A DNA stretch of 64,000 bases, from the NCBI RefSeq assembly GCF_000006765.1, contig NC_002516.2; one strand, 5' to 3'. Shown here in pieces: positions 10,064-38,324 of this stretch. Under the pieces are notes generated by a model. That model was not told the DNA's origin, searched no databases, and saw nothing but the letters and a program-made list of their open reading frames with translations. Within the stretch, counting starts at the first letter, position 1, and the number at the start of each line of letters is the position of its first letter. The DNA is from Pseudomonas aeruginosa PAO1 (GTDB lineage: Bacteria; Pseudomonadota; Gammaproteobacteria; Pseudomonadales; Pseudomonadaceae). The position numbers and the translations under genes were made by a program.

Positions 10064-10064
10064 G

Positions 10065-11768: not shown

Positions 11769-12146
11769 CAGGACTCCCGGCAACACGGGGAACGCGTCCT
11801 CCGCGGCCTGGCCGGCGGACGACGACGTTCGAAATGGATCACGGACCCGCGCCCGTGACGGCAAGGCGGAAAGGCTTTCCGCCAACGGAGCCGGGCAGAG
11901 CGACCGGCCCATGGCATTCGAGCGACCCGACGGCGGCTATGGTTCCTGGCGAAACCCGGCGCGATACCGACAGGTTAACCCGTTGACGTTGCTGGAGTTT
12001 TAACAGGCACGCCGGTTTCTTATCAAGAAATGTCAGGAATGGACGCCAGCAGAGGCAAACCTCTGCGTTTTCTTATGAAAAGCTGCGAAAATTCGCGAAA
12101 CGGCAGCAGGTCCGAAGCGGGCTCGACCGGACACCGGCAGCCTTCC

Positions 12147-12629
12147 TCATCCGTCTTCGCGAATCGCCTGGTAGCGGGCCTCCAGCTCCGCGCGCAGCTG
12201 GCGGCGTTGTTGGGCCTGGGCGAAGCGGCGCTTCTGCTCGGCGGTTTCCAGCTCCAGCGGGCGGACGGCCACCGGCTTGCGCTCGTCATCCAGGGCCACC
12301 ATGGTGAAGAAACAGCTGTTGGTATGACGCACGGACTGCTCGCGGATGTTCTCGGTGATGACCTTGACGCCGATTTCCATGGAAGTCCGCCCGGTGTAGT
12401 TGACCGAAGCGAGGAAGGTCACCAGTTCGCCGACATGCACCGGCTCGCGGAAGATCACCTGATCCACCGACAGGGTCACCACGTAGCGACCGGCATAGCG
12501 ACTGGCGCATGCATAGGCGACTTCGTCCAGATACTTCAGGAGGGTGCCGCCATGGACATTGCCGGAGAAATTGGCCATGTCCGGAGTCATCAGCACGGTC
12601 ATCGACAGTTGGTTGTTTCCGGGTTGCAT
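12147..12629 (-). CDS. Acyl-CoA thioesterase (hotdog fold); alternative start at 12713
   Basis: ANFSGNVHGGTLLKYLDEVA, GRTSMEIGV. Confidence 0.85.
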   Translation of the reverse strand: MQPGNNQLSMTVLMTPDMANFSGNVHGGTLLKYLDEVAYACASRYAGRYVVTLSVDQVIFREPVHVGELVTFLASVNYTGRTSMEIGVKVITENIREQSVRHTNSCFFTMVALDDERKPVAVRPLELETAEQKRRFAQAQQRRQLRAELEARYQAIREDG

Positions 12630-12789
12630 AGCGCTTTTTCTCTCATCAGGACGGGCGGGGGACACCATAGACGCAAACGAAGACGGCAGCGGCCACAAAT
12701 TTTCAATCGTCATGATCGAAATCGCGCCGGGTCGTGCAGACATCCGCGGGCTTTTCTAGACTGGCCCTTTTCCACCGGGAATCGCTCCA

Positions 12790-13533
12790 ATGCCTGCCGC
12801 CATACGCATCCTTCTCCTGGCCCTGGCCGTGCTTGCCGGCATCGGTGCCGCTGCCATCCAGGCCGAGGATACGCCCTGCGCCACCGCCGCGGAATGCAAC
12901 ACGCGCGGCACCCAGGCTTATCGACAGGGGAGTTATCCACAGGCGCTGGACGCCTTCGCCTGGCAATTGCGCCTGGCCGAGCGCCAGGAACAGGGCGGAG
13001 CCGACTCGGAACAGGCGCTGAACAATCTCGCGCTGACCAGCCTCAAGGCCGGGCAACCGGGACGCGCCCGCGCCTGGATGAACCTGGCGCTGGATCGCGG
13101 CTACAGCGGCAAGGCCACGCGCTACAACCTGGAACAGGTTGCCCTGAAAGTCGACTATCCGTCCCTCCAGGGCCTCGCCGGGCACTACCTGCGCTACGCC
13201 GGGCAGGCCGAATGGGAAAGCCTGCAGATCGAACCGGTGAAGGGCGGCTACCAGGCGAGCTTCGCCCTGATGCGCATCGGCAATCCGGAGAAACTGATGG
13301 AATATGGGCCCGCGGCGGTCGGCGAGTTGTCCGGTCGGCTGGAGGGGCAAGGCGCGCTCTACCGGCTGCGCAGCGAAGGCCTGGGCGCCGGCTGCAGCCT
13401 GCTGGTATGGCAGGAAGGCATCGACCTGCGAGTGGTGGAGAGCCTTGGCGGGGACTGCCAGGGTTACGGCGGCATGGGCATCGCCGCCGCCGGTAACTGG
13501 GTGAAGATATCCAGTCAGGCCAGGGACGACTGA
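12790..13533 (+). CDS. Secreted TPR-like hypothetical protein
   Basis: Signal peptide; helical repeats GTQAYRQGSYPQA and ALNNLALTSLKAG. Confidence 0.7.
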   Translation: MPAAIRILLLALAVLAGIGAAAIQAEDTPCATAAECNTRGTQAYRQGSYPQALDAFAWQLRLAERQEQGGADSEQALNNLALTSLKAGQPGRARAWMNLALDRGYSGKATRYNLEQVALKVDYPSLQGLAGHYLRYAGQAEWESLQIEPVKGGYQASFALMRIGNPEKLMEYGPAAVGELSGRLEGQGALYRLRSEGLGAGCSLLVWQEGIDLRVVESLGGDCQGYGGMGIAAAGNWVKISSQARDD

Positions 13534-13580
13534 AACTTTTCCACAGGCCGCTCCAGCGGAGCGACCCGTGGAAAATCCAC

Positions 13581-14339
13581 TCAGCGGCCAGCGGACAGGC
13601 CGAAGTCCACCGCCAGGTCGGCGCCCGTGATCGCTTCGGCCTGAGGGCCGCAGAGATACCAGACCAGCTCGGCGACTTCTTCCGGGCGGATGAAGCGTGC
13701 CGCCTTGCCCTGTGGATAATCCTTCAGCAGCGCGCGCTTGTAGCCATCCGGATTGCCCATCCCATAGCGTTCGGCCTGGTAGTCGAGCATCGGCGTGGCG
13801 ATATCCGCCGGCGACACGGCGTTGACCCGCACGCCCTGCTCGGCCAGTTCCAGCGCCAGGGTCTTGCTCAGCATGGTAAGCGCCGCCTTGCTCGCGCAAT
13901 ACGCCGCCGAACCCCGGTAGGCCTGGCGTCCGGAGTCGCTGGAGATGTTGACGATGCTGCCCTGGTTTTCCTTCAGGTAGGGAATCGCGGCCTGGCACAT
14001 GTAGAAGGAGGCCTTGAGGTTGACTCCCAGGACCAGGTCGAAATCCTCCTCGGTGAAGTTTTCCACAGGCCCCTCGCGCCAGACGCCCGCGGCATTCACC
14101 AGGGCGTCGAGACGTCCGGTACGGGCGAGAATCTTCGACATCAGGGTATGGCAGTTATCCGCGCTGCGCAGGTCGGCGACCCCGCTGGCGTCCAACGGCA
14201 CCTGCGCGTTCAGCGCGTGCAGGCCCTCCTTATCCACATCCGTGGCGGCGATGCGCCAATGACTCTGGGCGAAACGCTTGGCGATTGCCCGGCCCAAGCC
14301 GCCGGCTGCACCAGTGATAAGAACGACGGGCGTGCTCAT
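13581..14339 (-). CDS. Short-chain dehydrogenase/reductase
   Basis: TGAAGGLG, NAAG, YCASK. Confidence 0.92.
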   Translation of the reverse strand: MSTPVVLITGAAGGLGRAIAKRFAQSHWRIAATDVDKEGLHALNAQVPLDASGVADLRSADNCHTLMSKILARTGRLDALVNAAGVWREGPVENFTEEDFDLVLGVNLKASFYMCQAAIPYLKENQGSIVNISSDSGRQAYRGSAAYCASKAALTMLSKTLALELAEQGVRVNAVSPADIATPMLDYQAERYGMGNPDGYKRALLKDYPQGKAARFIRPEEVAELVWYLCGPQAEAITGADLAVDFGLSAGR

Positions 14340-14433
14340 CTGCTTTTCCTTACTCCTGTGCCGCGTGGAAAACACCGACGGCCAATCGGCCGCCCGCTTC
14401 AATGACTGACCGGCAACGCCGGCAGCCGTTCAT

Positions 14434-15801
14434 TCAGGCCTGGTTGAGATACCAGCGCCAGTCCTGCTCGCCGACCTCGCCCATGAAGGCACGGTATTCG
14501 GCCTGCTTGATCGCCAGGTAGATCTTCAGGAAATCCTCGCCGAGCGCCTCGCGCGCCCAGGCCGAGCCCTCCAGCGCGCGCAGCGCGGTCAGCCAGTCGC
14601 TCGGCAACGCCTGGGTGGCTTGAGCGTAGCCGTTGCCAGTGATCGGCGCACCGGGGTCGAGTCGCTCGCGAATACCCAGGCGCACCGCCGCGAGCAACGC
14701 CGCCGCCGCCAGGTAGGGATTGGCGTCGGCGCCGCAGATGCGGTGCTCGATGTGCCGGCTGGACGCCGGGCCGCCGGGAACCCGCAGCGACACGGTGCGG
14801 TTGTTGATTCCCCAGGTCGGCGCCAGCGGCGCGTAGCTGTTCGCCTGGAAGCGGCGGAACGAGTTGGCGTTCGGACAGAACAGCGCCAAAGACTCCAGCA
14901 GGCACGCCTTCATTCCACCGATGGCCTGGCGCAGCAGCGGGGTCCCGGCCGGGTCCTCGCTGGCGAACAGATTGTTGCCAGCGGCGTCGGCCAGGCTGAC
15001 GTGCAGGTGCAGGCCGCTGCCGGAAAGATCGGCGAACGGCTTGGCCATGAAGCAGGCCTGCAACCCATGGCGATTCGCCACGCCCTTGACCAGGCGCTTG
15101 TAGCGCACGCCTTCGTCGATCGCCTGGAGCGTGTCGAAGCGATGCTGCAGGGTAATTTCCACCTGCCCCGGCGCGTACTCCGAAATCGCCGTGCGCGCCG
15201 GCAGGCCCTGGGCCTCGCAGGCGGCATACAAGTCATCGAGGAATGGCTGCAACTGCTCCAGCTCGTAGACGCCATAGACCTGGGTCGCCCGCGGCCGCTG
15301 GCCATTCATCTGTAACGCCGGCAACGGCCGGCCGTCGCTGTCGCGTTCGCGGTCGAGCAGGTAGAACTCCAGCTCCACCGCCATCACCGGGTGGAAACCC
15401 TCCGCCTGCAGGCTGTGGATAACCCGCTGCAACACATGCCGGGGATCGCCCGCCGCGGCCGGTAGCCCGAGCTCGGGATGCATGCTTACCTGCACCTGGC
15501 CGGTCGGTGACTGCCGCCAGGGTTGCAGGGTCAGGCTGCCGGGCAGCGGGAAGGTCCAGCAATCGGCATCGCCGACGTCCCAGACCAGGCCGGTCTCCTC
15601 GACGTCATCGCCATTGATGGTCAGGCCGAGGATGGTGCTCGGCAGCGGCCGCCCGCTTTCGTAGACCGCCAGCAGCTCGTCGCGATGCAGCAGCTTGCCG
15701 CGCGGCACGCCGTTGGCGTCGATCAGGAACAGCTCGATGCTGCGCACCTCGGGGTGTGCGGCGAGGAACTCGCGGGCTTCCCGCGGATCGGCGAAATGCA
15801 T
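14434..15801 (-). CDS. pauA6: Gamma-glutamyl-amine ligase (GS family)
   Basis: DANGVPRGK, ELEFYL, EYAPGQVE, GSGLHLHVS, HIEHRICGADANPYL. Confidence 0.88.
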   Translation of the reverse strand: MHFADPREAREFLAAHPEVRSIELFLIDANGVPRGKLLHRDELLAVYESGRPLPSTILGLTINGDDVEETGLVWDVGDADCWTFPLPGSLTLQPWRQSPTGQVQVSMHPELGLPAAAGDPRHVLQRVIHSLQAEGFHPVMAVELEFYLLDRERDSDGRPLPALQMNGQRPRATQVYGVYELEQLQPFLDDLYAACEAQGLPARTAISEYAPGQVEITLQHRFDTLQAIDEGVRYKRLVKGVANRHGLQACFMAKPFADLSGSGLHLHVSLADAAGNNLFASEDPAGTPLLRQAIGGMKACLLESLALFCPNANSFRRFQANSYAPLAPTWGINNRTVSLRVPGGPASSRHIEHRICGADANPYLAAAALLAAVRLGIRERLDPGAPITGNGYAQATQALPSDWLTALRALEGSAWAREALGEDFLKIYLAIKQAEYRAFMGEVGEQDWRWYLNQA

Positions 15802-15802
15802 C

Positions 15803-17197
15803 TCAGGCCTCCCGCGCGCCGGGTATGGCGAGCAGCTCGCCGAGCGCCTCGTCGAGGCTGGAGAGCAGGCGGTCGACATCTTCTTCGCGAGTGTCCGGGC
15901 AACACAGGGTCATGTTGTGGAACGGCGTGATGAGGATGCCGCGGTTGATCAGATACAGGTGCAAGGCCATCTGCAGGCTGTCGTGGAACGCCGCCTCGGC
16001 GGCCGCGCCGTCGCGTGGGGGTTGCGGGCAGAACTGGAACTCGCTGCGCGCGCCGAGCTCGGTCACCGACCAGGCCAGGCCGTGCTTGTGGATAATCCTG
16101 CGGAAGCCCTCGGCCAGACGCGCCGCCAGGGGCAGCATGTGGGCGTAGGCGGTATCGGTCATCACCTCTTCCAGGTTGGCGCGCATACAGCGCATCGCCA
16201 GGGCGTTGGCCGACAGCGTGGTACCCATGCCGCTGTGGCCGTGGCCTTCGCTCTGCTCGCTGGCACGTGCCCTGGCCAGTTGCATGGCGCTGGCCATCGC
16301 CGCGCTGCAACCATACACCGAGCACGGTACGCCGCCGGCGATCGGCTTGCCGAGGGTGATGAAGTCCGGCTCGAGCTTCCAGGCGCGGGTACAGCCGCCA
16401 GGACCTGTGGAGATGGTGTGGGTCTCGTCGATGATCAGCAGCGTGCCGTGACGACGGGTCAGCTCGCGTAGCTTCTGGTGGAAGCCGGGTTGCGGCAGGA
16501 CCATGCCGATGTTGGTCATCGCCGGCTCGCAGAGCACGGCGGCCACGTCTTCGCCGGCCAGCGCCCGCTCCAGGGCCTGGAGGTCGTTGAACGGCACCGC
16601 GCGGCTGAACTGGGTGAGGTCGTGGGCCTGGCCGAGCAGGCCGGAGCGATGCACGGTGCGGCCGTCGCGGCAGCGAACCAGGGTGTCGTCGACCGTGCCG
16701 TGGTAGCAACCGTCGAATACCAGCACCACCTTGCGACCGGTGATCGCACGCGCCCAGCGCAGGACGAAGCGGTTGGCGTCGGTAGCGGTGGTCGCTACCT
16801 GCCAGAACGGCAGGCCGAAGCGCTGCGCCAGCAACTCGCCTGCGACGATGGCATCCTCCCCCGGAAGCATGGTGGTCAGGCCGTTCGCGCCCTGCTCGGC
16901 GAGCGCCCGGGCGATCGGCGCCGGAGAATGGCCGAACATGCTGCCGGTATCGCCCAGGCAGAAGTCCACGTAGGCGTGGCCGTCCACATCATGGAAACGC
17001 GCGCCGTGGGCACGCGCCACGAACAGCGGACAGGGTGTTGACCAATCGCTCATCCAGTGCATCGGTACGCCGTCGAACAAGGCGCGCCGGGCTCGCTCGG
17101 CGAGCGCGACGGACTGTGGATTCTGCGCAAGGAAACGTTGCTGCTCGCGGGCCATGAAGGTTTCCACGGCGGCTTCGGCGATGCCACTGGCGGTCAT
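15803..17197 (-). CDS. Class III PLP aminotransferase
   Basis: DFCLGDTG, IIDETHT, TLGKPIAGG (PLP lysine); GAGGTG RBS before ATG 17197. Confidence 0.9.
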   Translation of the reverse strand: MTASGIAEAAVETFMAREQQRFLAQNPQSVALAERARRALFDGVPMHWMSDWSTPCPLFVARAHGARFHDVDGHAYVDFCLGDTGSMFGHSPAPIARALAEQGANGLTTMLPGEDAIVAGELLAQRFGLPFWQVATTATDANRFVLRWARAITGRKVVLVFDGCYHGTVDDTLVRCRDGRTVHRSGLLGQAHDLTQFSRAVPFNDLQALERALAGEDVAAVLCEPAMTNIGMVLPQPGFHQKLRELTRRHGTLLIIDETHTISTGPGGCTRAWKLEPDFITLGKPIAGGVPCSVYGCSAAMASAMQLARARASEQSEGHGHSGMGTTLSANALAMRCMRANLEEVMTDTAYAHMLPLAARLAEGFRRIIHKHGLAWSVTELGARSEFQFCPQPPRDGAAAEAAFHDSLQMALHLYLINRGILITPFHNMTLCCPDTREEDVDRLLSSLDEALGELLAIPGAREA

Positions 17198-26017: not shown

Positions 26018-26979
26018 TCATTCCGCGACCATCCGACACGCCAGGAACGCCTCTTCGAGCGCCTCTTCATCCGCGCCTGCGGCGAGGATCAGTTCCAGCC
26101 GATTATCCCGCCGCCACGAGGACTTGCCCCAGTTATCCACAAACGGCGCGGCATTCGCTGCATACCAACCGTCCGCGCAATGCAGCACCGCCTTGGCTCG
26201 CCGCAGTCCGGACAGACGGTTCAGCCAGGCGTCCACTGCGGCCCGATCGAAACGCACCGACGGCGCCAGCCGATGGCGAACTGGCCGTCCTGCTCGCGCA
26301 CGGCGCGCAGCGGTCGCTCGGCAAGCAGCACCGTTCCCAACTGAGCAGGCGCCTCCGGCAGGGCCGCCCAGGTCGTCGCGCTACCTTCCCCGGCAACGCT
26401 GGTCGGCAGATCGCGCAATGCCAGGTGACCGCGCACGCTCCAGCGCAACGGCAGGACCGGCAGGCGCGCACGCACGGCGCAGCGCTGCGTCGCGTCGAGC
26501 GTTTCGGATTTGTTCAGCAGCAACATGCCGGCCGCTTCCAGCGCCTGTTCCTGTGCCTCCGGCAGCGGTTGGCCGGAGGCCAGCGCGGCGGCATCCAGCA
26601 CCACTACCAGGGGTTGCAGGGCCAGGACGCCGGACCAGGGAGGAGCCTGCAGCTGTTTCCACAGCGCCTGCGGATGTCCCAACCCGGATGGTTCGATGAA
26701 CAGCCGGTCCGGCCGTGCCCGACGCAACAAGCGACCGAGCCCCACCTGGAACGGCACGCCATTGACGCAGCAGAGGCACCCGCCCGCCACCTCGCCGATG
26801 GCCACGCCGTCGACGTCCGTGGCCAGCAGCGCGGCATCCAGGCCGATCTCGCCGAACTCGTTGACCAGCACCGCCCAGCGCTCGCCCGCCGGCTTCTGCG
26901 CCAGCAGCGAGCGGATCAGGCTGGTCTTGCCGGCCCCCAGGGGGCCGCCGATCAGGTGTGTGGGTATCTCTCGAAGCAT
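26018..26979 (-). pseudogene. COG0523/CobW-family GTPase split by a frameshift near 26262-26266
   Basis: GPLGAGKT, GCLCC, EPSG in the 26221-26979 ORF; C-domain (RAKAVLH...NRLELI) continues in another frame 26018-26257; total 962 bp. Confidence 0.75.
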
Positions 26980-27081
26980 CTGCGCAACCGGAATGTGAAA
27001 GCCTGTGGATCAATGCGGTCCTTGCCTGCGGGGAGCCAGGCCCCGTGCTAGAGTCGCGCCCGTCTGCAATGGAGTCCTCGC

Positions 27082-27450
27082 ATGCGTCCGTTCCTGTTCT
27101 TCCTGTCCTGCCTGCCGGGCCTGGCCCTGGCCGAAGCCTGCATCGTCCATAGCCAGGCGAAGAATCTCGACGTGAAGGTCTGCCAGCAGAACCGCAGCAT
27201 CCCGGCCAAGCTGTTCCGCGAAGGCTTCTGCCAGCCACAACTGCAGGGCCAGAAGGTCGAGGTGACGTTCGCCGAGGAATGTCCGACGGGCGCCTTCGGT
27301 GTCTGCCGCGACGCCAGGGTACCCAACGCGCCCTATCGGCAGGACATCTTCTACTACGGCATCGCGACCGACGCACGCTACCTGGAGCCGTTCTGCGCCA
27401 GCCAGAGCCAAGGTCGCTGGGAAGAGCCTAGCGCCGCGAAAAAGCCCTGA
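27082..27450 (+). CDS. Small secreted Cys-rich hypothetical protein
   Basis: Signal peptide (ALA-EA), six Cys in the mature part, GGAG RBS. Confidence 0.75.
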   Translation: MRPFLFFLSCLPGLALAEACIVHSQAKNLDVKVCQQNRSIPAKLFREGFCQPQLQGQKVEVTFAEECPTGAFGVCRDARVPNAPYRQDIFYYGIATDARYLEPFCASQSQGRWEEPSAAKKP

Positions 27451-27548
27451 GCGCGTCATCAGCCTGTCACAGCGTCAGGGCTAAATGGGAGTCGGGTACC
27501 TCAGCACCCTTCGTCCCCATCCCCAAGGTAGGACGACTTTTTGGTGAT

Positions 27549-27574
27549 AGGCCATCTGCGGATGGCCTTTTTTT
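27549..27574 (+). terminator. Intrinsic terminator
   Basis: AGGCCATC-TGCG-GATGGCCT followed by a T-run. Confidence 0.8.
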
Positions 27575-27602
27575 ATTCCTCGAAAGACACTTGTCCACAG
27601 GC

Positions 27603-28244
27603 TCAGGCAAGCCAGTCCAGGGTCAACAGCAGGCGCGCCAGCCCAGGCTCCGCTCGCGGCGAGCGATGCACCAGCCCGGCACCTTCGTTACCCTCCCAGC
27701 GTTCGCCCTTGAGCAGCGCCACGTCGCCCGTGGACAAGCTGTGGATAAGCTGTTCGTCGACAACTTCGGCCTGCGCTCCGCCAAGCAGCCGACGGTCCAG
27801 GCCGGACTCGTCCAGCCATTCGCTGGCGGCGCCCTGGTAGGTGGTGACCAGCCGCAGCGGCACGTGGTCGACGTGGAAACGCGGGCACATCGGTTTATCC
27901 AGAACGCGCAGGCGCAGGCCGATACGCCGCGCCCCGGTCAGGCAGGAGAAGGCCTCGACCAGCCAGCCCAGGTCGTCGAGGAAATCGGTTTGTCCCGGCA
28001 GTTGCTGCGCGTCGAGCAGGCCGTCCAAGACGGGTAGCCGTTCCTCTTCCATCTCCAGCGTCTGGCTCAGCGCCAGTCCCGGCCGGTTGCGCACCAGGGC
28101 GGCGGCGAAGTCGCGCAGCGCCGGGCTCAACCGGCGTGTCCAGACCGCCAGGTTGACGCCCTCGCGAAGCACCTCGGCCAGCACCTGGGGGTCGTCATCG
28201 AACGCCTGGCGCGGCAACGGTTTTTCCTGCGGCAGTGCGCTCAT
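27603..28244 (-). CDS. DUF1826 family protein
   Basis: [32 protein letters not shown]. Confidence 0.85.
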
Positions 28245-29443
28245 GCGGCGTGCCCCCAGTCCTCGAAGGGGTCGTCCAGGCCCTGCCAGCCGGGGATGCC
28301 CAGGTTCATCTCGGCGTCATCCAGCAGGCAGGCGTCCAGGGCTGCGCGCAGGGCCGCGAAGTCCAGGTTCTGACCGATGAAAACCAGCTCCTGGCGACAG
28401 TCGCCGACGCCTTCCTCCCAGTGCCGCATGATCGCCCGCAGGCCCTCTTCGTCCTGTGGCCACTGTCCGGTCGGCACGAATCGCCACCAGCGGCCCGCCA
28501 GACCGTAGCGCATCAGGCCGCCGGCCTGCGACCAGCTGCCGGCCTCGCGGGGCCGGCTGGCGAGCCAGAAGAAGCCCTTGGAGCGCAGCAGCCGCCCCTG
28601 CTTCAGCGGATTGTGCAGGAAGGCGTGGAAGCGCGCGGGGTGGAACGGCCGGCGCGCCCGGTAGGCCATGGAGGCGATGCCATATTCCTCGGTTTCCGGC
28701 AGGTGCTCGCCGCGCAGTTCCTTCAGCCAGCCCGGCGCGGACGCCGCGCGATCGAAATCGAAGCGACCGGTATCGAGGATCTTCGCCAGCGGCACCTGAC
28801 CCATCACCATCGGCAGGATCTCCGCCTCGGCATTGAGCTGGCGCAGGATCGCCAGCAGTTCCTCGCGCTGCTCGCTGGAGATCAGGTCGATCTTGCTGAC
28901 CAGGATCACGTCGGCGAATTCGACCTGGTCGATCAGCAGGTCGGTGATCGAGCGCTGATCCTCCTCACCGAGGGTTTCGCCACGACTGGCCAGGCTGGCG
29001 GCCTCCTGGTAGTCGCGGAGAAAATTCATCCCGTCGACCACCGTGACCATGGTATCCAGTCGCGCCACGTCGGACAGGCTGCGGTCCAGCTCGTCGCGGA
29101 AGGTGAAGGTCTCGGCCACCGGCATCGGTTCGGAAATCCCGGTGGACTCAATCAGCAGGTAGTCGAAGCGGCCTTCCCGGGCGAGACGGCCGACCTCTTC
29201 CAGCAGGTCTTCGCGCAGGGTGCAGCAGATACAGCCGTTGCTCATCTCCACCAGGCGTTCTTCAGCGCGGTTCAGGCTGACATCGCGCTGGACCTCGCTG
29301 CCATCGATATTGATTTCGCTCATATCGTTGACGATCACCGCAACCCGTCGGTTCTCGCGGTTCTTCAGCACATGGTTGAGCAGCGTGCTCTTGCCGGCGC
29401 CGAGAAAGCCGGACAGCACGGTGACAGGTAGGCGTTGGTTCAC
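28241..29443 (-). CDS. zigA: COG0523 zinc metallochaperone GTPase
   Basis: [27 protein letters not shown]; GTG start. Confidence 0.9.
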
Positions 29444-29457
29444 GGTTGGTAACCTCT

Positions 29458-29862
29458 TCAGTTGTGCCGCACGTGGCGTTCGCGCTTCTCCTGGCGCTCT
29501 TTCGCCTCGATGCAGAGGGTGGCGGTGGGACGCAACAGCAGGCGGCGCAGGCCGATCGGCTCGCCGGTTTCCTGGCACCAGCCGTAGTCGCCGCGGGCCA
29601 GGCGCTCCAGCGCTTCGTCGATCTTGTCGAGCAGCTTCTTCTCCCGCTCCAGCAGGCGAAGTTGCCATTGCCGCTGTTCCTCGCGGGAAGCCAGGTCGGC
29701 CTCGTCGCTGGGGCGTTCGAGATCGCGCAGCTCGCCGAATTCGCCTTCGATGCGCGCCTGAAGTTCCTGTCGCTGACGCAGCAGCAGGTCGCGGAAGAAG
29801 TCCTGCTGGGCTTCGTCCATGTAGGCAGCGTCGGGCTGGGCAAGCAGTTCCTGTTCGGTCAT
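29458..29862 (-). CDS. dksA2: Zn-independent DksA paralog
   Basis: DEADLAS coiled-coil tip; zinc finger degenerate (CxxT...CxxA). Confidence 0.92.
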
Positions 29863-29886: not shown

Positions 29887-29901
29887 CGTTATACTATAAC
29901 A
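29887..29901. promoter_or_regulatory. Zur box
   Basis: CGTTATACTATAACA palindrome between dksA2 and the divergent ORF. Confidence 0.85.
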
Positions 29902-29974: not shown

Positions 29975-30391
29975 ATGCGCCGCGTCCTCCGCCTTTACTG
30001 CCTGGCCCTCCTGCTGCTCGCTCCGGCGGCACAGGCGCAGGGCTTTCTTCCCGGCACCCGCCCGGCGGAATGCGCTTACCTGCGCACCGTTCTGGCCTGC
30101 ATGGATCGGCTGGGCAACCACTACAGCGTCGCCACCGGCGGCAACGACACCTGGCTGCGCGGCTACGACGCGGCGAGCGGACGACGCTGGGCCCAGACCA
30201 ATACGCGCTACGGGCGCCTGACCTTCTTCAGCGGCATCGCCAGCGATGGGGAAATCTGGGTCGGCCTCAGCCGCAACATCGGCTGGACCAGCGTCAGCCG
30301 CCTGAGCAGTTCATCGGGCCAGCGCCAACGCCTGACCTGCGGGCGGGTCAGCGGCTGCAGCGAAGGCCCTAGCCGGGAGGCTGCGCGCTGA
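29975..30391 (+). CDS. Secreted hypothetical protein
   Basis: Signal peptide (AQA-QG); Cys pairs; 3' end overlaps amiA. Confidence 0.7.
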   Translation: MRRVLRLYCLALLLLAPAAQAQGFLPGTRPAECAYLRTVLACMDRLGNHYSVATGGNDTWLRGYDAASGRRWAQTNTRYGRLTFFSGIASDGEIWVGLSRNIGWTSVSRLSSSSGQRQRLTCGRVSGCSEGPSREAAR

Positions 30392-31562
30392 GCGCCGCCA
30401 GGTAGCTGCCGGCGGGAGGGCGTTGCCGGAAGTAGCCCTGCACGCCAGCGAAGATCGCCTCGGCCAGGCGCTGGCGATGGCGTTCGTCCATCAACCGGCG
30501 ACAATCGCCGCGATTCGAGATGAAGCCGGTCTCCACCAGGATCGAAGGGATGTCCGGCGACTTGAGCACGGCGAAGCCGGCCTGCTCGACACGCTTCTGG
30601 TGCAGCGCGGTGACGTCCGACAACTGGCCGAGAACGCTGTGGCCGAGGTCCAGGCTGCTGGCGATGGTCGAACTCAGGGCCATGTCGAGGATCACCCCGG
30701 CGAGTACCTTGTCGCGGCCCTGTAGCGGCAGGTTGCCGCTGTTGCCGATCAGGTCGGCGCCGTTCTCGCGCTCGGCCATCCAGCGCGCCATGGTCGAGCT
30801 GGCGCCATGCTCGGAGAGGGCATATACCGACGCGCCGGAGGCGGTCAGTCGCGGCGCCGCGTCGGCGTGCACCGAAACGAACATGTCGGCGTTGTAGCGC
30901 CGGGCCACTTCCGGCCGCTTGCGCAGCGGGACGAACACATCGCCGTTGCGCACCAGGCGCGCCTTGAAGCCTTTCTCACGGTCGATCCGCCGCGCCAGCA
31001 GGCGGGCGATGGCCAGCGCCACGTCCTTTTCGCGCTCGCCCTTGCTACCGACCGCGCCGGGGTCCTTGCCGCCATGGCCGGCATCGACCACCACGAGGAT
31101 GTCGCGGCCCGTCGAGGGTAGCGGGCGGGCCAGCGCCAGCATTGGCTCGGGGGGCGCCGCCAGCGCCTGTGGATATAGGTCCAGGACCAGGCGATGGCCC
31201 TTTCCCGCCTGCGGTTCCAGGGCGAAGCTGCGCGGCCTGACCGCTTGGCGCAGATCGAGGACGATGCGCGTCCCGCCGCCACCCAGTTGGCCACTGCGTA
31301 TGGCGCGCACGGGGCCGTCCAGCGGTAGCTCGGAGAGCGTTGCGAGCAATTGCGCGTCGGGCAGGTCGAGGATCAACCGCTCGGGGGCCTGCAGGGAAAA
31401 GGTTCGATAACGCGGCGGGCCGTCCAGTTCCAGCACCAGGCGCCAGCTTTCCGAGGAATTCCAGGCCCGGGCCTGGCGGATTCGTACATTGGCGCTGGCG
31501 GCTAGGAACGGCTGGAGGGCCAGGCCGGCGAGCAGGCTTTGCAGGAGACGACGGCGCTTCAT
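30369..31562 (-). CDS. amiA: N-acetylmuramoyl-L-alanine amidase (AMIN + Amidase_3)
   Basis: Arg-rich signal, DAGHGGKDPG, EKDVAL, SVHAD, LVETGFISN. Confidence 0.93.
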   Translation of the reverse strand: MKRRRLLQSLLAGLALQPFLAASANVRIRQARAWNSSESWRLVLELDGPPRYRTFSLQAPERLILDLPDAQLLATLSELPLDGPVRAIRSGQLGGGGTRIVLDLRQAVRPRSFALEPQAGKGHRLVLDLYPQALAAPPEPMLALARPLPSTGRDILVVVDAGHGGKDPGAVGSKGEREKDVALAIARLLARRIDREKGFKARLVRNGDVFVPLRKRPEVARRYNADMFVSVHADAAPRLTASGASVYALSEHGASSTMARWMAERENGADLIGNSGNLPLQGRDKVLAGVILDMALSSTIASSLDLGHSVLGQLSDVTALHQKRVEQAGFAVLKSPDIPSILVETGFISNRGDCRRLMDERHRQRLAEAIFAGVQGYFRQRPPAGSYLAALSAQPPG

Positions 31563-31602
31563 CGACGAAATACCCGATTGCAAGGGTCGGCATTAGCTAA
31601 TA

Positions 31603-31617
31603 CGTTATATTATAACA
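31603..31617. promoter_or_regulatory. Zur box
   Basis: CGTTATATTATAACA between divergent amiA and folE2. Confidence 0.88.
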
Positions 31618-31661
31618 TTCAAGCCATTTCCAGGCCTTGCCTACCCTTCTTCGAGTTCTCC

Positions 31662-32558
31662 ATGAATGCCTTGACGCTTCCCGATATCGCCCGCCAGACC
31701 ACCACCGCCGATCTTCCCCTGGACTGGGTCGGCATGCAGGGCATCGCCCTTCCCGTGCAGATCGGCGGGCAGAGGGTCGCCGCCGAAGCCGATGCCGGTG
31801 TCAGCCTGGACGACCCGCAGGCCCGCGGCATCCATATGTCGCGCCTCTACCTGGCGCTGGCCGAACTGGAACAGGGCGAGCTGGACCTTTCCTGCCTGCG
31901 CGCCGTCCTGCAACGCTTCCTCGACAGCCACGCCGGCCTGTCGCGTCGCGCCTACCTGCGCCTACGCCTCGCGCCGCTGCTGCGGCGTCCGGCGCTGGTC
32001 AGCCCGCTGAGCGGCTGGAAACGTTATCCACTGGTGCTGGACACGCGCCTGGAAGGCGATGACTTCCAGGCCGAAGTCCATCTCGAGCTGACCTACTCCT
32101 CGACCTGCCCCTGTTCGGCGGCACTGGCCCGGCAATTGATCCAGGAGCGCTTCGACCAGGACTTCGCCGGACAGCCGCTCGATCATGCCAGCGTGCTCGC
32201 CTGGCTCGGCAGCAGCGCCGGCATCGTCGCCACCCCGCACAGCCAGCGCAGCAGCGCGCACCTGCGCATCGGCCTGGCGGAAGACTGCATCGGACTGCCC
32301 CTGGAAGAGCTGGCGGATCTCGGCGAAAGCGCCCTCGGCACCGCGGTGCAGACTGCGGTGAAACGCGCCGACGAGCAGGCCTTCGCCCTCGCCAACGGGC
32401 AGAACCTGATGTTCTGCGAGGACGCGGTGCGCCGGCTGCACCGCGCCCTGCAGGGTTATCCACAGGCGAGCCGGTTCTCCATACGGGTCGTCCATGCGGA
32501 AAGCCTGCATGCCCATGACGCCGTCGCCGAAAGCCATTGGCAGCGAGGTGCAGCATGA
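31662..32558 (+). CDS. folE2: GTP cyclohydrolase IB
   Basis: GIHMSRL, YSSTCPCS, ESLHAHDA. Confidence 0.93.
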   Translation: MNALTLPDIARQTTTADLPLDWVGMQGIALPVQIGGQRVAAEADAGVSLDDPQARGIHMSRLYLALAELEQGELDLSCLRAVLQRFLDSHAGLSRRAYLRLRLAPLLRRPALVSPLSGWKRYPLVLDTRLEGDDFQAEVHLELTYSSTCPCSAALARQLIQERFDQDFAGQPLDHASVLAWLGSSAGIVATPHSQRSSAHLRIGLAEDCIGLPLEELADLGESALGTAVQTAVKRADEQAFALANGQNLMFCEDAVRRLHRALQGYPQASRFSIRVVHAESLHAHDAVAESHWQRGAA

Positions 32559-33115
32559 TCCGCAAGAATCCCTCCGGCGACCTGCCGGTGATCGACGAAT
32601 CGGCCTATGTGGACAAGACCGCGATCATCTGCGGCAAGGTGATCATCCAGGCCAACGTCTTCGTCGGTCCCTACGCAGTGATCCGTGCCGACGAAGTCGA
32701 CGCCGACGGCGGCATGCAACCGATCGTGATCGGCGCCAACTCGAACATCCAGGACGGCGTGGTGATCCATTCCAAGTCGGGTGCCGCGGTGACCATCGGC
32801 GAGCACAGCTCCATCGCCCACCGCTCCATCGTCCACGGTCCTTGCGAAGTCGGCGACCGGGTCTTCATCGGCTTCAACAGCGTGCTGTTCAACTGCCGGG
32901 TCGGCGATGGCTGCGTGGTCCGCCACAACGCGGTGGTCGACGGCTGCGACCTGCCAGCGGGTTTCTACGTACCGTCCACCGAGCGCATCGGTCCGCGCAC
33001 CGACCTGGCGAGCATGCCGCGGGTCAGCGTTTCCGCCAGCGAGTTCTCGGAAGACGTGGCGCGCACCAACGTCGACCTGGTACGCGGCTACAAGTCGCTG
33101 CAGAACGAGTTCTGA
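32555..33115 (+). CDS. Gamma-class carbonic anhydrase (hexapeptide repeat)
   Basis: VIRADE, NIQDGVVIH, HRSIVHGPC. Confidence 0.88.
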   Translation: MIRKNPSGDLPVIDESAYVDKTAIICGKVIIQANVFVGPYAVIRADEVDADGGMQPIVIGANSNIQDGVVIHSKSGAAVTIGEHSSIAHRSIVHGPCEVGDRVFIGFNSVLFNCRVGDGCVVRHNAVVDGCDLPAGFYVPSTERIGPRTDLASMPRVSVSASEFSEDVARTNVDLVRGYKSLQNEF

Positions 33116-33117
33116 AC

Positions 33118-34455
33118 ATGCAAAGCCTGCTGATCCGCAATGCCCGGATGGTCAACGAGGGGCAGGTACGCGAAGGCGATCTGCTGGTCCGCCACGGTCG
33201 CATCGAACGCATCGCCGGCTGCCTGGAAAACTGCGGCGCCAGCCGGGAGATCGATGCCGCCGGACGCTACCTGCTGCCGGGAATGATCGACGACCAGGTG
33301 CACTTCCGCGAGCCGGGTTATCCACAGAAGGGCTCGATCGCCAGCGAATCCCGCGCCGCCGTGGCGGGCGGCATCACCAGTTTCATGGACATGCCCAATA
33401 CCCGCCCGGCGACGCTGAGCCTCGAAGCGCTGGCGGAAAAGAAGCGCCTCGCCGCCGCCCATAGCGTGGCCAACTACGGTTTCCACTTCGGCGTCAGCCG
33501 CGACAACCTCGACACCGTGGCCGCCCTCGATCCACGCGAGGTCGCCGCGGTGAAGGTGTTCATGGGCGCCTCCACCGGCGACATGCTGGTGGACGACCTG
33601 CCGACCCTGGAGCGCCTGTTCGCCAGCGTTCCGACCCTGCTGCTGAGCCATTGCGAAGACACGCCGCGGATCGAAGCCAACCTGGCGCGCTGGCGACAAC
33701 GCTTCGGTGAACGTATTCCGGCAGCCGCCCACCCGCGCATTCGCGACGCCGAGGCTTGCTACCGTTCCACCGCCCTGGCGGTGGAACTGGCGCAACGACA
33801 TGGCACGCTGCTGCATGTCCTGCACTTATCCACAGCGCGTGAACTGGCCCTGTTCGAGGACAAGCCGCTGTGCCAGAAACGCATCACCGCGGAAGTCTGC
33901 GTCCACCATCTGCTGTTCGACGACAGCGACTACGCCCGCCTCGGCCATCTGCTCAAGTGCAACCCGGCGATCAAGAGCCGCGAGGACCGCGACGCCCTGC
34001 GCAGGGCGCTGGCCGGCAACCGCCTGGACGTGATCGGCACCGACCACGCGCCGCACGCCTGGGCCGAGAAGCAGCAGGCTTATCCACAGGCGCCGGCCGG
34101 CCTGCCACTGGTCCAGCATGCGTTGCCGGCACTCCTGGAGCTGGTCCGCGAAGGCTGGCTGTCGCTGGCCACCCTGGTGGCGAAGACCAGCCACCGGGTC
34201 GCCGAACTGTTCGCCATCGCCGATCGCGGTTTCCTCCGCGAAGGTTACTGGGCCGACCTGGTGCTGGTCAGCGAACTGGAGCACCCGGCGCTGGCCAGCG
34301 CCATGCCGCTGCTGTCGCGCTGCAACTGGACGCCGTTCCGCCACCGGGCATTCCACCATCGGATCGATACCACCATCGTCTCCGGGCAACTCGCCTGGCA
34401 CGCGGGACGCCTGTCCGACGATTGCCAGGGACTGCCCCTGCGGTTTTCCCGCTGA
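33118..34455 (+). CDS. pyrQ: Dihydroorotase paralog
   Basis: IDDQVHFREPG, DMPNT, KCNPAI, TDHAPH. Confidence 0.9.
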   Translation: MQSLLIRNARMVNEGQVREGDLLVRHGRIERIAGCLENCGASREIDAAGRYLLPGMIDDQVHFREPGYPQKGSIASESRAAVAGGITSFMDMPNTRPATLSLEALAEKKRLAAAHSVANYGFHFGVSRDNLDTVAALDPREVAAVKVFMGASTGDMLVDDLPTLERLFASVPTLLLSHCEDTPRIEANLARWRQRFGERIPAAAHPRIRDAEACYRSTALAVELAQRHGTLLHVLHLSTARELALFEDKPLCQKRITAEVCVHHLLFDDSDYARLGHLLKCNPAIKSREDRDALRRALAGNRLDVIGTDHAPHAWAEKQQAYPQAPAGLPLVQHALPALLELVREGWLSLATLVAKTSHRVAELFAIADRGFLREGYWADLVLVSELEHPALASAMPLLSRCNWTPFRHRAFHHRIDTTIVSGQLAWHAGRLSDDCQGLPLRFSR

Positions 34456-34499
34456 AGTCTTGTCCACAGCCTGCTGTGGATATCCGTTCGCCCACGGCC

Positions 34500-35744
34500 C
34501 TAGCGCAGGGCTTTCACCGCCGCGCCAAGGAAGGCATAGGTCTCCTCCTCGCGATCGTCCATCTCCGGCTTCGGCCAGGCGCTCCAGACCACCGCCACGA
34601 TCTTCTCCTTGCGGTTGATGTAGAGGTACTGGCCGAAGATGCCCTGGGCTTCGAAGGCCCCGCCGTCATGCTCGGGCAGGGCCTTGGCGCCCACCGGGAA
34701 GGTCCACCACTGGTAGCCGTAGCCGAGCGCGTATTCGCCATCGTAGAGCTTGCCCGGGGCCAGGTGGGAAGAAGCCTCGACGCGACTGGCACGATCGACC
34801 CAACCTTCGGGGAGGATACGTTCGCCATCGATCACCCCGTCCTCGAGGACGAACTGGCCGAAGCGGCCATAGTCGCGCAGGGTCGCGCTCAAGCCGCTGC
34901 TGCCGATCTCTTGCCCGGCCGGCGATTCCAGTTGCCAGAAGCCGTCGCTCTCCATGCCCATTCGCGCCCAGATCCGCTCGGACAGGTAGTCGCTCACCGG
35001 AATGCGGGTCGCCGCGTGCAGCAGCTCGCTCTGCAGGTGCGACTCGCCGGTGCTGTAGGTGAAGTGGGTACCGCTCGGGTACTGCCGCGGCAGGCTCGCC
35101 AGCAGCCGCAGGATGCCACCGGGACGTTCGGCGAGCTGGGCGTCGAACATCTGCCGGCGGTCGGACTTCGGATCGCGATAGGTCTCGTTCCAGCGGACCC
35201 CGGAACTCATCTGCAGGACCTGCTCCACCGTCACCCCCTGGTAGGCGGAGCCGGCCAGGCTCGGCAGGTACTTGTCCACAGGCTGGTCGAGAGCCAGCAG
35301 GCCCTGCTGCACGGCGGCGCCCACCAGGGTCGAGGAGATCGACTTGACCACCGAGAACGAGGTCCAGCGCGTCCGTTCGTCGTTGCCCAGGCCGTAGCGC
35401 TCCAGGGCGACCTTGCCATCCTTGAGGATCAGCACGCCGCCAACGCGGTTGCGCCGCATGAAATCGTCGACGCCGTATTCCTCGCCGCCGATCCGGTAGC
35501 GCGGCGCGATGGCCACACCCGCCGGCAGCGGACGGACCTTGGTCCCCTTGTGGATAACCCGGGTCGGATAGACCTTGTCCATGTTCCGGTAGGTGTCCGG
35601 CTGGTATTCCGGGATCAGTTCATAGAGATCGGCGGCACGGCCGATCCGCGGGTTTTCCACAGCCGCGTCGGCGCCGGCCGAGCCGCTTGCCGAGACGAAC
35701 AGTGCCAGCAGGGCCGGCCGGAAGACTGATATACAGCTACGCAT
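34500..35744 (-). CDS. Serine hydrolase, beta-lactamase fold (PA5542/PIB-1-like)
   Basis: Signal peptide, SVVK (SxxK), FTYST, YGYQWW, AQGIFGQ. Confidence 0.85.
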   Translation of the reverse strand: MRSCISVFRPALLALFVSASGSAGADAAVENPRIGRAADLYELIPEYQPDTYRNMDKVYPTRVIHKGTKVRPLPAGVAIAPRYRIGGEEYGVDDFMRRNRVGGVLILKDGKVALERYGLGNDERTRWTSFSVVKSISSTLVGAAVQQGLLALDQPVDKYLPSLAGSAYQGVTVEQVLQMSSGVRWNETYRDPKSDRRQMFDAQLAERPGGILRLLASLPRQYPSGTHFTYSTGESHLQSELLHAATRIPVSDYLSERIWARMGMESDGFWQLESPAGQEIGSSGLSATLRDYGRFGQFVLEDGVIDGERILPEGWVDRASRVEASSHLAPGKLYDGEYALGYGYQWWTFPVGAKALPEHDGGAFEAQGIFGQYLYINRKEKIVAVVWSAWPKPEMDDREEETYAFLGAAVKALR

Positions 35745-35830
35745 GGACGTTTTCCTTATGACCGGAAGCAGCTCCGGCTTCGTCGTTTTTATGGATGTGG
35801 ACTGGCGTCGCAGTGTTATCCACAGGACGT

Positions 35831-36229
35831 TCAGTCGCTCGGGTCCCGTATCGGACACGCCCAGAGTTCGACCGCCGGGCGCTCAGGGTCCGGCGGACCG
35901 ATCCAGCGCGCCAGCGCATCGCAGCGCCCCTGACGGCAGATCCGGTAGTCGCCGGCCTCCGGTGTGCGCCCCAGCCGCAACGGTTGCAGCGGCGGCACCC
36001 CACGGTGGTAATGCCAGGCGCCGTCACGCAGCACGGCGCCCTCGGGAATCTCCATCCCCGCCCCGCTGCCCCGCACCCGGGCCTCTTCCAGCAGCAGGCC
36101 GCGCTCACTCAGGCGATAGTCTTCTTCCCAGAGCACCTTCTCGACCGTGTGTTGCCAGGCCAGGGTGAACGACTGCAGCGGCAGCGTCGCCCAGACGCTG
36201 CCGGCCATGCCCAGACACAGCGCGATCAC
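35831..36229 (-). CDS. DUF1850 family TRAP-associated protein
   Basis: FTLAWQHTVEK...WEEDY, GSGAGME; GTGA overlap with the permease. Confidence 0.75.
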   Translation of the reverse strand: MIALCLGMAGSVWATLPLQSFTLAWQHTVEKVLWEEDYRLSERGLLLEEARVRGSGAGMEIPEGAVLRDGAWHYHRGVPPLQPLRLGRTPEAGDYRICRQGRCDALARWIGPPDPERPAVELWACPIRDPSD

Positions 36230-38250
36230 GCCACCGCCTCGCGCGCACGCTGGCGCCAGAGGTGCCAGCCGATCACCAGCGCGCCGAGGACGAAGCCCAG
36301 CTCGTCGCTGATCGGCAAGGCCAGGACCAGGCTGGCCCCCGCGGCGAACGCCACCAGGCGCTCCCACCAGGCCAGCGGCCCCTGCAGGTAGCCGATGGAA
36401 GCCATGCCCCACAGGCCGATGGCCAGCACCGCCTTGCAGGTGACATAGAGCGTCGCCCCCCAACCGCCTTCCTGCAGCATCAGCGCCGGGGAATACACCG
36501 CCATGAACGGCACCACGAAACCCGCCAGGGCGATGCGCACCGCCCAGAAGCTGATCTTCAATCCCCTTTCCTTGGCGATCGGCGCGGCCGCGAAACAGGC
36601 CAGCGCCACCGGAGGGGTGAGGTCGGCGAGGATGCCGAAGTAGAAGACGAACATGTGCGAGACGATCAGCGGCACCCCCAGTTCCAGCAGCGCCGGCGCG
36701 GCGATGGAGCTGGTGATGATGTAGTTGGGGATGGTCGGGATGCCCATTCCCAGGACCAGGCAGGTGACCATGGTCAGGACCAGCGACAGCAGCAGGTTCT
36801 CCCGTCCCAGGTCGAGCACGTAGCTGGCGAAGGTGGTGGCGATGCCGGTCAGCGAAATCACCCCGATGATGACTCCCACCAGGGTGCAGGCGATGCCCAC
36901 CGGAATCGCATGTCGCGCACCTTCGGCGAGGGCGCGGACGCAGATGCGCAGGGTTTCCCGGCCGCCACGGACGAACCAGCAGGCCAGGGCCAGGGCCGCG
37001 ATCACGACGAAGATCACCCCGATGCCGAGGCGGAAGAACCCCGCGCAGAGCAGCCCCAGCGCCACCCAGAAGGCGATGCGCAGGCCGAGCGAGGACACCC
37101 GCAGGATGATCGCCGAACCGAGGATGACGATGGCGGTCAGCGCCAGGCCGATGGTTCCGGAGAACAGCGGCGTGCGCCCGGAGAACAGCAGCGCGATCAG
37201 CACCAGCAACGGAATCAGCAGGAACCAGCGCTCGCGGACGGCACCCCAGGCGCTCGGACACTGATCGCGCGGCAGGCCCTTTAGATCGGCCCGGCGGGCC
37301 TCGAGGTGGACCATCCAGTACACCGAGCCGAAATACAGCAGGGCCGGGATCAGCGCCGCCTTGGCGATCTCCACGTAGGGGACGTTGATGGTCTCGGCCA
37401 TAATGAACGCCACCGCCCCCATCACCGGCGGCATCAGTTGGCTGCCCATGCTCGCGGTCGCCTCGACGCCGCCGGCGAACGCCGGCTTGTAGCCGAAACG
37501 CTTCATCAGCGGGATGGTGAACTGTCCGGTGGTGACCACGTTGGCCACGCCGGAGCCGGTGATGGTGCCCATCAGCGCCGAGGAGAATACCGAGACCTTG
37601 GCCGGCCCGCCGACCCGGTGACCGAACAGGCCCATGGCGAAATCGGTGAACAGGCGGATCATGCCGGCCTGCTCGAGGAAGGCGCCGAACAGGATGAACA
37701 GATAGATGTAGGTGGCCGATACGTAGGTCGGCGTGCCGTAGAGACCTTCGGTACCGAACGACAGCTGGTTGACGATCTGGTCGAAGCCGTAGCCGCGGTG
37801 GGCCAGGTCGCCCGGCAGGTGTTCGCCGAACAGGCCATAGGCAAGAAACAGCGCGCAGATGATCGGCAAGGCGATGCCCATCACCCGTCGCGCCGCCTCG
37901 AAGACCAGGACGATCAGCACCACGCCGACGACCATGTCGGCCTGGGTCAGCTCTCCGGAGCGCTGGATCAGGTCGCCCTCGAAAACCCACTGGTAGACCG
38001 CCGTGCCCAGGCCGGCCATGCCCAGCAACCAGGCCAGCGGCTGCCAGGGGCGACCTATGCCGAAGGCGGGATAGCTGATGTACACCACCAGCAACAGCAG
38101 TCCGACGTGCATTGCCCGCAGGACCTGGGTGGAAATCAGGGGAAAGGCCGCGGTGACGACCTGGAACACGGAAAAGGCCAGGGCCACGGCGAACAACGCG
38201 CGCGGCCAGTTTTCCGCCTCAAGATGCAGCCCGTTCTGATGATCGCTCAT
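36226..38250 (-). CDS. TRAP transporter 4TM/12TM fusion permease
   Basis: GGPAKV, EATASMGSQLMPPVMGA, TPPVALA. Confidence 0.92.
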   Translation of the reverse strand: MSDHQNGLHLEAENWPRALFAVALAFSVFQVVTAAFPLISTQVLRAMHVGLLLLVVYISYPAFGIGRPWQPLAWLLGMAGLGTAVYQWVFEGDLIQRSGELTQADMVVGVVLIVLVFEAARRVMGIALPIICALFLAYGLFGEHLPGDLAHRGYGFDQIVNQLSFGTEGLYGTPTYVSATYIYLFILFGAFLEQAGMIRLFTDFAMGLFGHRVGGPAKVSVFSSALMGTITGSGVANVVTTGQFTIPLMKRFGYKPAFAGGVEATASMGSQLMPPVMGAVAFIMAETINVPYVEIAKAALIPALLYFGSVYWMVHLEARRADLKGLPRDQCPSAWGAVRERWFLLIPLLVLIALLFSGRTPLFSGTIGLALTAIVILGSAIILRVSSLGLRIAFWVALGLLCAGFFRLGIGVIFVVIAALALACWFVRGGRETLRICVRALAEGARHAIPVGIACTLVGVIIGVISLTGIATTFASYVLDLGRENLLLSLVLTMVTCLVLGMGIPTIPNYIITSSIAAPALLELGVPLIVSHMFVFYFGILADLTPPVALACFAAAPIAKERGLKISFWAVRIALAGFVVPFMAVYSPALMLQEGGWGATLYVTCKAVLAIGLWGMASIGYLQGPLAWWERLVAFAAGASLVLALPISDELGFVLGALVIGWHLWRQRAREAVA

Positions 38251-38324
38251 GCATCGACTCCCTACAGCCGGAAACGCGGGGAACCCGGTCCGCCGCACGG
38301 ACCGGGGCTACGGAGAAACGGGCC

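Follow-up and report, generated by a model that had tools for sequence, protein, structure and literature searches.

Binding sites for the replication initiator DnaA that lie outside oriC have been described in several bacteria, and these systems frame the locus considered here, namely six perfect matches to the consensus DnaA box in and beside the zinc-regulated folE2/gamma-carbonic anhydrase/pyrQ operon of Pseudomonas aeruginosa PAO1. The operon lies in a stretch of 64,000 nucleotides of contig NC_002516.2 (hereafter the window; ~66% GC), situated just counter-clockwise of oriC; species and position also follow from its base composition, an OXA-50-family gene and the order of its genes. The Dam/SeqA sequestration system of Escherichia coli is, to our knowledge, absent from Pseudomonas, and for that reason the control of re-initiation is less clear in this genus. 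The datA element of E. coli is a DnaA-binding locus outside oriC that carries consensus boxes and lowers initiation potential; it is a single compact locus of ~1 kb, with ~5 boxes and an essential IHF site, and promotes the hydrolysis of DnaA-ATP. The DnaA-box clusters (DBCs) of Bacillus subtilis are discrete, mainly intergenic and located on both sides of oriC. They comprise several groups of boxes near the origin, whose number and proximity matter and whose joint deletion advances initiation (PMC13438810). In E. coli, boxes near oriC also exceed the number predicted from composition; they have been argued to be positively selected as an aid to titration, to which they are suited by being duplicated right after initiation (2025, PMC12371093). 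This enrichment is modest (Z about 2), extends over ~10 centisomes and concerns degenerate motifs, and the study in question does not cover Pseudomonas. In P. aeruginosa itself, DnaA binds the boxes of oriCII in vitro in electrophoretic mobility shift assays, the published binding covering the oriCII boxes only, and a single sentence of the same paper states that the 129 boxes of the form TTWTNCACA in strain PAO1161 show a left-arm enrichment (Wawrzyniak et al. 2026, PMC13438810).

We found that the six boxes are part of a larger array and no distinct entity. They sit within a one-sided DnaA-box zone on the yidC/gidA side of oriC, and the part of this array that falls in the window comprises 23 perfect TTATCCACA sites between 7469 and 61160. 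Unlike the E. coli enrichment, the Pseudomonas array consists of perfect 9-mers, at a density ~20 times that of the remaining origin-proximal arms, over 50-100 kb and strictly on one side. Unlike datA, the group at the zinc operon has its six perfect boxes spread over 3369 bp, mostly within genes and as a stretch of a longer array; the IHF consensus WATCAANNNNTTR has a single match in the window, at 54854, and none in 31-36 kb. In contrast to the B. subtilis DBCs, the array is dispersed and confined to one side; its boxes are mostly within genes, and it does not depend on which genes these are. The left-arm enrichment reported for P. aeruginosa concerns the same organism and the same side of oriC, and this enrichment (PMC13438810), along with the general idea of origin-proximal enrichment in E. 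coli (PMC12371093), is already known. We found no description in the literature, the main text of PMC13438810 included, of the dense zone of 50-100 kb, of the dnaA side being empty, of box density being independent of gene content, of the turnover of sites or of the boxes of the Zur operon.

A pattern search of the window placed the exact matches to TTATCCACA, the consensus high-affinity DnaA box of the E. coli R1/R4 type, at 32456, 33318, 33826, 34080 and 35816 on the forward strand and at 35549 on the reverse strand. It thereby recovered all six perfect boxes and all six near-boxes of a preliminary description of this DNA, and added one to the latter, giving seven one-mismatch sites within 31168-35661. 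The claim that these are genuine consensus high-affinity boxes occurring far above chance likewise holds: the window contains 23 perfect boxes, as against 0.12 expected from dinucleotide-preserving shuffles, and 28 one-mismatch sites, as against 3.3; the form TTWTNCACA has 30 matches in its 60 kb. Under a null in which synonymous codons were shuffled within each gene, all proteins and the per-gene codon usage being kept, 0.44 +/- 0.65 intragenic perfect boxes (maximum 3) are expected, versus 17 observed. The other six boxes of the window are intergenic, and the whole set is divided between the strands, 13 on the forward and 10 on the reverse. The intragenic boxes are read as LST (three), xIHx (six), xYPQ (five) and, in antisense, xVD[NK] (three), every frame able to encode TTATCCACA being used, and the flanks of the boxes have no extended repeat in common. 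Gene limits in these counts are those of a GC3-based caller (GC3 being the GC content of third codon positions), with a Pfam check for part of the genes. As a proxy of expression, by which one might ask whether boxes avoid highly expressed genes, GC3 is uninformative in this genome.

Genome-scale counts were made in the nearest genome, G001, a single contig of 6,316,979 bp that has 86% of sampled 31-mers in common with the window, as well as 21 of its 23 perfect boxes, and whose three oriC boxes lie ~0.7 kb beyond the point corresponding to the window's right end. This genome has 70 perfect boxes versus 16 matches to a reversed control word. Twenty-eight of the 70 fall in the 100 kb on the yidC side of oriC, 16 of them in the nearer half (-50 to -1 kb) and 12 in the farther (-100 to -50 kb), and none is present on the dnaA side at +1 to +100 kb; the first 60 kb of the dnaA side has five one-mismatch sites, which is about the chance number, and no TTWTNCACA match. 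The density at -50 to -1 kb amounts to 33-41 boxes per 100 kb in G001 and in two other species of the genus, G003 and G004, as against 0.1-2.4 beyond 200 kb. The terminus-proximal third is nearly devoid of boxes in these three genomes and in G066, a representative of another genus (g21) of the family, which has none between 2.13 and 4.14 Mb. Far from oriC, the lagging-strand orientation is favored, with 19 of 24 boxes on the distal left arm of G001. The parS-like sites of G001 (TGTTCCACGTGGAACA, zero or one mismatch), four in number, all lie at 3108-15003, i.e. 3.1-15 kb on the dnaA side, and none occurs in the window; oriC is hence flanked by a ParB zone on the dnaA side, without DnaA boxes for 150 kb, and by the DnaA-box zone on the yidC side.

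The one-sided layout recurs across the genus. Counting perfect boxes in 60 kb on either side, anchored on yidC unless stated otherwise, we found 23 on the yidC side and none on the dnaA side in P. aeruginosa (window and G001), 20 and none in each of G002 and G004, 26 and none in G007, and 20 and none in G003 (-50 kb vs +50 kb). Outside the genus, G066 has 24 and three, and G061 has 14 and two. The array is present in all five species of the genus examined at the oriC flanks and in G066, and each of 16 counted genomes of the genus is rich in boxes, with 70-122 versus 5-15 for the control word; the sample is small, and the genomes, being related, are not independent. The block glmU-atp-parAB-gidAB-trmE-yidC is all that G003 and G004 have in common with the window. 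Beyond it their flanks are non-orthologous and lack the Zur operon, yet are equally box-rich at the same distance from oriC, the hosts being AraC-type regulators, a citrate transporter, a glucose/sorbosone dehydrogenase, an epimerase and an M16 peptidase. Similarly, within the window the same density is seen in gidA, trmE and the OXA-50, SDR, glutamine-synthetase-like and transaminase genes. The pyrQ gene itself is found in two of 34 species of the genus, and a strict pattern, with no looser model tried, detected no Zur-box in the flanks of G066, G003 and G004.

The six boxes near the zinc operon had been singled out as the densest sub-cluster, which is nominally correct (six in 3369 bp) and in effect a tie, six further boxes falling in 3561 bp at 57600-61160 (gidA, oriCII, trmE); a third group, at 12933-16095, has five in 3163 bp. 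When 23 sites were placed uniformly on 64 kb, at least six fell in some 3.4-kb window in 8% of trials and in some 4.7-kb window in 25%; the density of the cluster is unremarkable (P about 0.08) because that of the window as a whole is so high. Three boxes in a single gene, as in pyrQ, are also seen in the dehydrogenase of G003, and a sensor-kinase-like gene of G066 has four.

Comparison with orthologous loci shows how individual boxes come and go. At 32456-32464 (+), at the 3' end of folE2, GGT TAT CCA CAG encodes GYPQ; this box is polymorphic, reading CTATCCACA in G001 and being perfect in the sister species G089, and the G066 orthologue has GEEW in its place. It is one of two window boxes absent from G001, along with that at 22979, and looks like a recent loss there. 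Within pyrQ, the box at 33318-33326 (+) encodes GYPQ where orthologues of other genera read GAPH or GAPD, which means that it was made by amino-acid changes, and the box at 34080-34088 (+) encodes AYPQ, with PYLQ or PYCQ in the orthologues. The third box of this gene, at 33826-33834 (+), uses the rare codons TTA TCC ACA for LST, a position at which the orthologues read LST or ITS with common codons, one of them having TTG AGC ACG for LST. The fifth box, at 35549-35557 (-), lies in sense orientation in a beta-lactamase-fold gene and encodes VIHK, and the sixth, at 35816-35824 (+), is intergenic, 72 bp upstream of the start of the same gene and 7 bp past the stop of a DUF1850 gene. G089, at 87% DNA identity, keeps four of the six perfect (32456, 33318, 34080 and 35549); the one at 33826 reads TTGTCCACA there, and that at 35816 is lost, with a different perfect box nearby. 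Differences between boxes and orthologous codons are both synonymous and nonsynonymous, in P. aeruginosa as in G066; a change such as that from GEEW in G066 to GYPQ in folE2 has likes in other genes, and runs in the reverse direction for the boxes of G066 itself.

Six pyrQ orthologues from other genera (~70% amino-acid identity) contain no perfect box in their 4.3-kb loci. The preliminary description had proposed examining whether orthologues distant from oriC are free of these 9-mers; they do lack every box, an outcome in favor of that description, but four of the six also lie only 44-77 kb from yidC, and no dependence on position is shown by them. The absence of boxes at such short distances from oriC therefore shows lineage-specific gain of boxes. 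Taken together, the orthologue comparisons and the turnover of sites argue for selection on regional density, with individual sites being replaced. One intragenic box behaves otherwise: that in gidA at 58705-58713, where CTT ATC CAC ATC encodes LIHI, is found at identical codon positions in G003, G004 and G066; no other intragenic box of the array was seen to keep its position in this way.

The observations as a whole are best explained, and in our judgment with fair probability, by a position-defined array of high-affinity boxes that is selected for density, probably titrates DnaA and has the Zur operon as a passive host. Under this explanation, the six boxes would be a segment of an array that occupies, on the yidC/gidA flank of oriC, the 50-100 kb nearest the origin; P. 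aeruginosa would have it in common with the rest of its genus and with at least one more genus of the family. The target of selection would be the regional density of boxes and not given sites or genes; boxes would be written into whatever DNA is present, in all frames able to accommodate them and even where this entails rare codons or altered amino acids, and single sites would turn over among lineages. The array would likely serve to bind DnaA beside the origin: as it would be copied within the first minutes after initiation, binding capacity would jump and free DnaA would drop. By analogy, this would amount to initiator titration of the kind proposed for the origin-proximal enrichment of E. 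coli, for datA and for the B. subtilis DBCs, and a DnaA-binding or 'sink' role, which the preliminary description had suggested, appears to be the most plausible function of the origin-proximal boxes. The Zur-repressed operon, which lies 28-31 kb from yidC, would be there by chance. If this explanation is true, the array would constitute an unusually clean natural test bed for initiator titration, as synonymous recoding is possible gene by gene, and, in a defined part of the chromosome, selection at the DNA level would prevail over codon usage and even over the sequence of proteins.

Several points weigh against this explanation. We infer DnaA binding and titration at the array boxes from sequence alone, because the sites match the consensus, binding at oriCII has been published and the argument on early duplication has been made for E. 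coli. The one-sided layout is not predicted by simple titration. The box is on the lagging strand in 41 of the 67 non-oriC boxes of G001 (hand count), which is weak relative to the preference in E. coli. The conservation of boxes in G089 is only suggestive, at three mismatches in 54 box bases versus a background divergence of 12.6%. Lastly, the array is not family-wide: among other genera, G074 has one box on the yidC side and none on the dnaA side, G032 has seven and five, and G075 is two-sided, with six and nine within about 80 kb.

An alternative that we consider rather unlikely, though not negligible, is that the array has a positive or domain-marking role, either concentrating DnaA near oriC and oriCII for the loading of low-affinity sites or marking the origin domain opposite parS/ParB, without lowering free DnaA. 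It would account better than titration for the strict one-sidedness, with the array facing the four parS sites across oriC, and is consistent with the contiguity of the array with oriCII, where DnaA activates gidAB-parAB (PMC13438810). The near absence of boxes from the terminus-proximal third is also typical of proteins marking DNA outside the terminus. Titration, however, is compatible with the same sequence facts, and the direction of the effect is not indicated by the present data; the advanced initiation seen upon deletion of the origin-proximal clusters of B. subtilis speaks for a negative role (summarized in PMC13438810).

It is decidedly improbable that the boxes are operators of the genes that they lie in or beside, e.g. 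the box at 35816 upstream of the beta-lactamase-fold gene. DnaA does act as a transcription factor at gidA in P. aeruginosa (PMC13438810), and the density of boxes between genes is about twice that within them, six of the 23 boxes occurring in the 14% of the window that lies outside called genes. Furthermore, the tightest group, with four sites of at most one mismatch in 553 bp (35272-35824), is at the 5' end of that gene. Yet 17 of the 23 boxes are deep in unrelated genes and in both orientations, their positions are not conserved among orthologues save for the one gidA box, and density tracks chromosome position as opposed to gene identity.

Marginally less probable still is the zinc gating put forward in the preliminary description, in which Zur silences the operon and DnaA occupies its boxes until zinc starvation sends RNA polymerase through them, freeing DnaA and coupling metal status to initiation. 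The regulatory part of this proposal stands. The unit begins with folE2, encoding a zinc-independent GTP cyclohydrolase IB (31662-32558, +; Pfam GCHY-1, 3.9e-67), the end of which overlaps by 22 nt with the gene for a gamma-carbonic-anhydrase-like hexapeptide-repeat protein (32537-33115, +; Pfam Hexapep). After a gap of 2 nt there follows the last gene, pyrQ/pyrC2, for a dihydroorotase-like amidohydrolase (33118-34455, +; Pfam Amidohydro_1), whose product is 100% identical to that of G001, 94% to that of G089 and ~70% to those of other genera. A perfect Zur-box palindrome, GTTATATTATAAC, is found at 31604-31616 in the amiA/folE2 spacer, 46 bp upstream of the folE2 start. In the portion of Pederick et al. 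(2015, PMC4542158) considered here, the cluster PA5532-PA5541 comprises the same genes (dksA2, amiA, folE2, gamma-carbonic anhydrase, pyrC2), Zur sites are reported at PA5538/PA5539, and zinc limitation induces folE2, the gamma-carbonic anhydrase gene and pyrC2 93.6-, 37.6- and 37.9-fold, respectively; that portion neither mentions DnaA boxes nor proposes a link to replication.

As regards the boxes, the preliminary description was right in placing three in pyrQ, and folE2 has one; only these four of the six perfect boxes, together with two near-boxes, are inside the transcribed unit. Simple promoter and terminator scans found no sigma-70 consensus, and no terminator-like site between pyrQ and the convergent beta-lactamase-fold gene (PA5542-like), and PA5542 and PA5543 rise 5- to 7-fold upon zinc limitation without a Zur site, according to the same portion of PMC4542158; read-through could therefore cross all six boxes. 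In addition, the G066 homologues of neighboring zinc-cluster genes (CobW-like and PA5534-like) also carry four boxes. Nevertheless, local density is not above the baseline of the array (P 0.08-0.25), and equal density is seen in the constitutive gidA and trmE and in species devoid of the operon, which removes the claimed special tie of the boxes to zinc control. Moreover, the array is found in every genus species examined and pyrQ in hardly any, and the G066 folE2 orthologue has no box. The operon accounts for four of ~70 perfect boxes, such that even complete eviction would shift binding capacity by ~6%, and high-affinity sites should be rebound soon after the polymerase has passed. Three RNA libraries yielded contigs spanning 33.5-35.8 kb at a word depth of 13-20, with folE2 and the carbonic anhydrase gene barely assembled; this evidence consists of contigs and a raw depth of ~1-5x, the contigs showing neither strand nor level, and it weakly suggests that the boxes at 33826, 34080 and 35549 may lie in DNA that is transcribed anyway. 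Nothing specific favors zinc gating. As the Zur operon is not special in its boxes, a link between zinc and replication is not to be assumed from box counts, which give no ground for it on their own; the value of the correction lies here. About equally improbable is a combined scheme in which a selected, gene-independent 'DnaA zone' faces the parS/ParB zone and conditional transcription of embedded operons, of which the Zur operon would be the prime example, measurably alters DnaA occupancy and tunes initiation to metal starvation.

Finally, the reading of the 9-mers as an artefact, whether of composition, of codon usage, of a peptide motif that recurs or of a repeat element, is already refuted, given that both shuffles yield fewer than one box on average, four different peptide contexts are encoded with use of rare codons, no repeat is common to the flanks and the reversed control word is ~10-fold rarer than TTATCCACA across the genus.

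Around the operon, the genes for a cobW-like protein (28241-29443, -) and dksA2 (29458-29862, -) are followed by a second perfect Zur-box palindrome at 29888-29900, upstream of dksA2; the two palindromes in the window compare with 0.09 expected. Divergent from folE2 is an amiA-like N-acetylmuramoyl-L-alanine amidase gene (30369-31562, -; Pfam Amidase_3 and AMIN), which harbors the near-box ATATCCACA at 31168-31176 (-). The near-box missing from the preliminary description, TTATCCACT at 32024 (+), is in folE2, and TTGTCCACA occurs at 32608-32616 (-) in the gamma-carbonic-anhydrase-like gene. The beta-lactamase-fold gene (34500-35744, -; Pfam Beta-lactamase, 1.9e-52), which faces pyrQ tail to tail and does not belong to the Zur operon, starts at 35744 with an AAGGA ribosome-binding site and contains two antisense near-boxes, TTGTCCACA at 35272 (+) and TTTTCCACA at 35653 (+). 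The 44-bp convergent spacer holds a head-to-head pair at 34460-34483, TTGTCCACA at 34460 (+) and ATATCCACA at 34475 (-), 6 bp apart; the pair forms an imperfect 8/9 hairpin without a T-run and is not kept in G089. Within 31-36.4 kb a single terminator-like hairpin has a T-run; it lies at 35765-35790 (+), just upstream of the beta-lactamase-fold start, and could halt antisense read-through from pyrQ ahead of the box at 35816. The contig pattern over 33500-35824 might arise if the mRNA of the convergent gene runs on, in antisense, into pyrQ, or if there is an internal promoter. Farther on are the DUF1850 gene (35831-36229, -) and DctM (36226-38298, -).

Elsewhere in the window, a stretch of 21.8 kb (35825-57599) stands out by being free of perfect boxes and contains the TRAP transporter, glmS, glmU, the atp operon, parAB and gidB; boxes are likewise missing from atp to parA in G002, G003, G004, G007 and G066, and the gap may reflect a constraint of codon usage or expression in highly expressed genes. 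The gidA/trmE spacer (59168-60389), the oriCII of the literature, belongs to the same array; five boxes with one mismatch are clustered there at 59403-59591, and 60018 and 60359 are the positions of perfect ones. A 598-codon open frame at 59671-61467 (-), which overlaps trmE out of frame and shows 55-60% tblastn identity to relatives, was considered as trmE and rejected: it has no Pfam match, Pfam places trmE at 60390-61778, and the frame is a spurious shadow of high GC, liable to mislead gene calling at this locus. A search of plasmids returned nothing relevant. At the other end of the array, the intrinsic OXA-50-family class D beta-lactamase gene (7220-8029) has two perfect boxes within 7469-7692, one sense and one antisense. 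The densest stretch of all was seen in G066, where 18 perfect boxes fall within 12 kb (G066:C1:5739745-5751864), 27-40 kb from yidC, a density exceeding that found anywhere in P. aeruginosa; they are partly in orthologues of the window genes at 3104-6210 and 26221-28244, and several are in uncalled or intergenic DNA.

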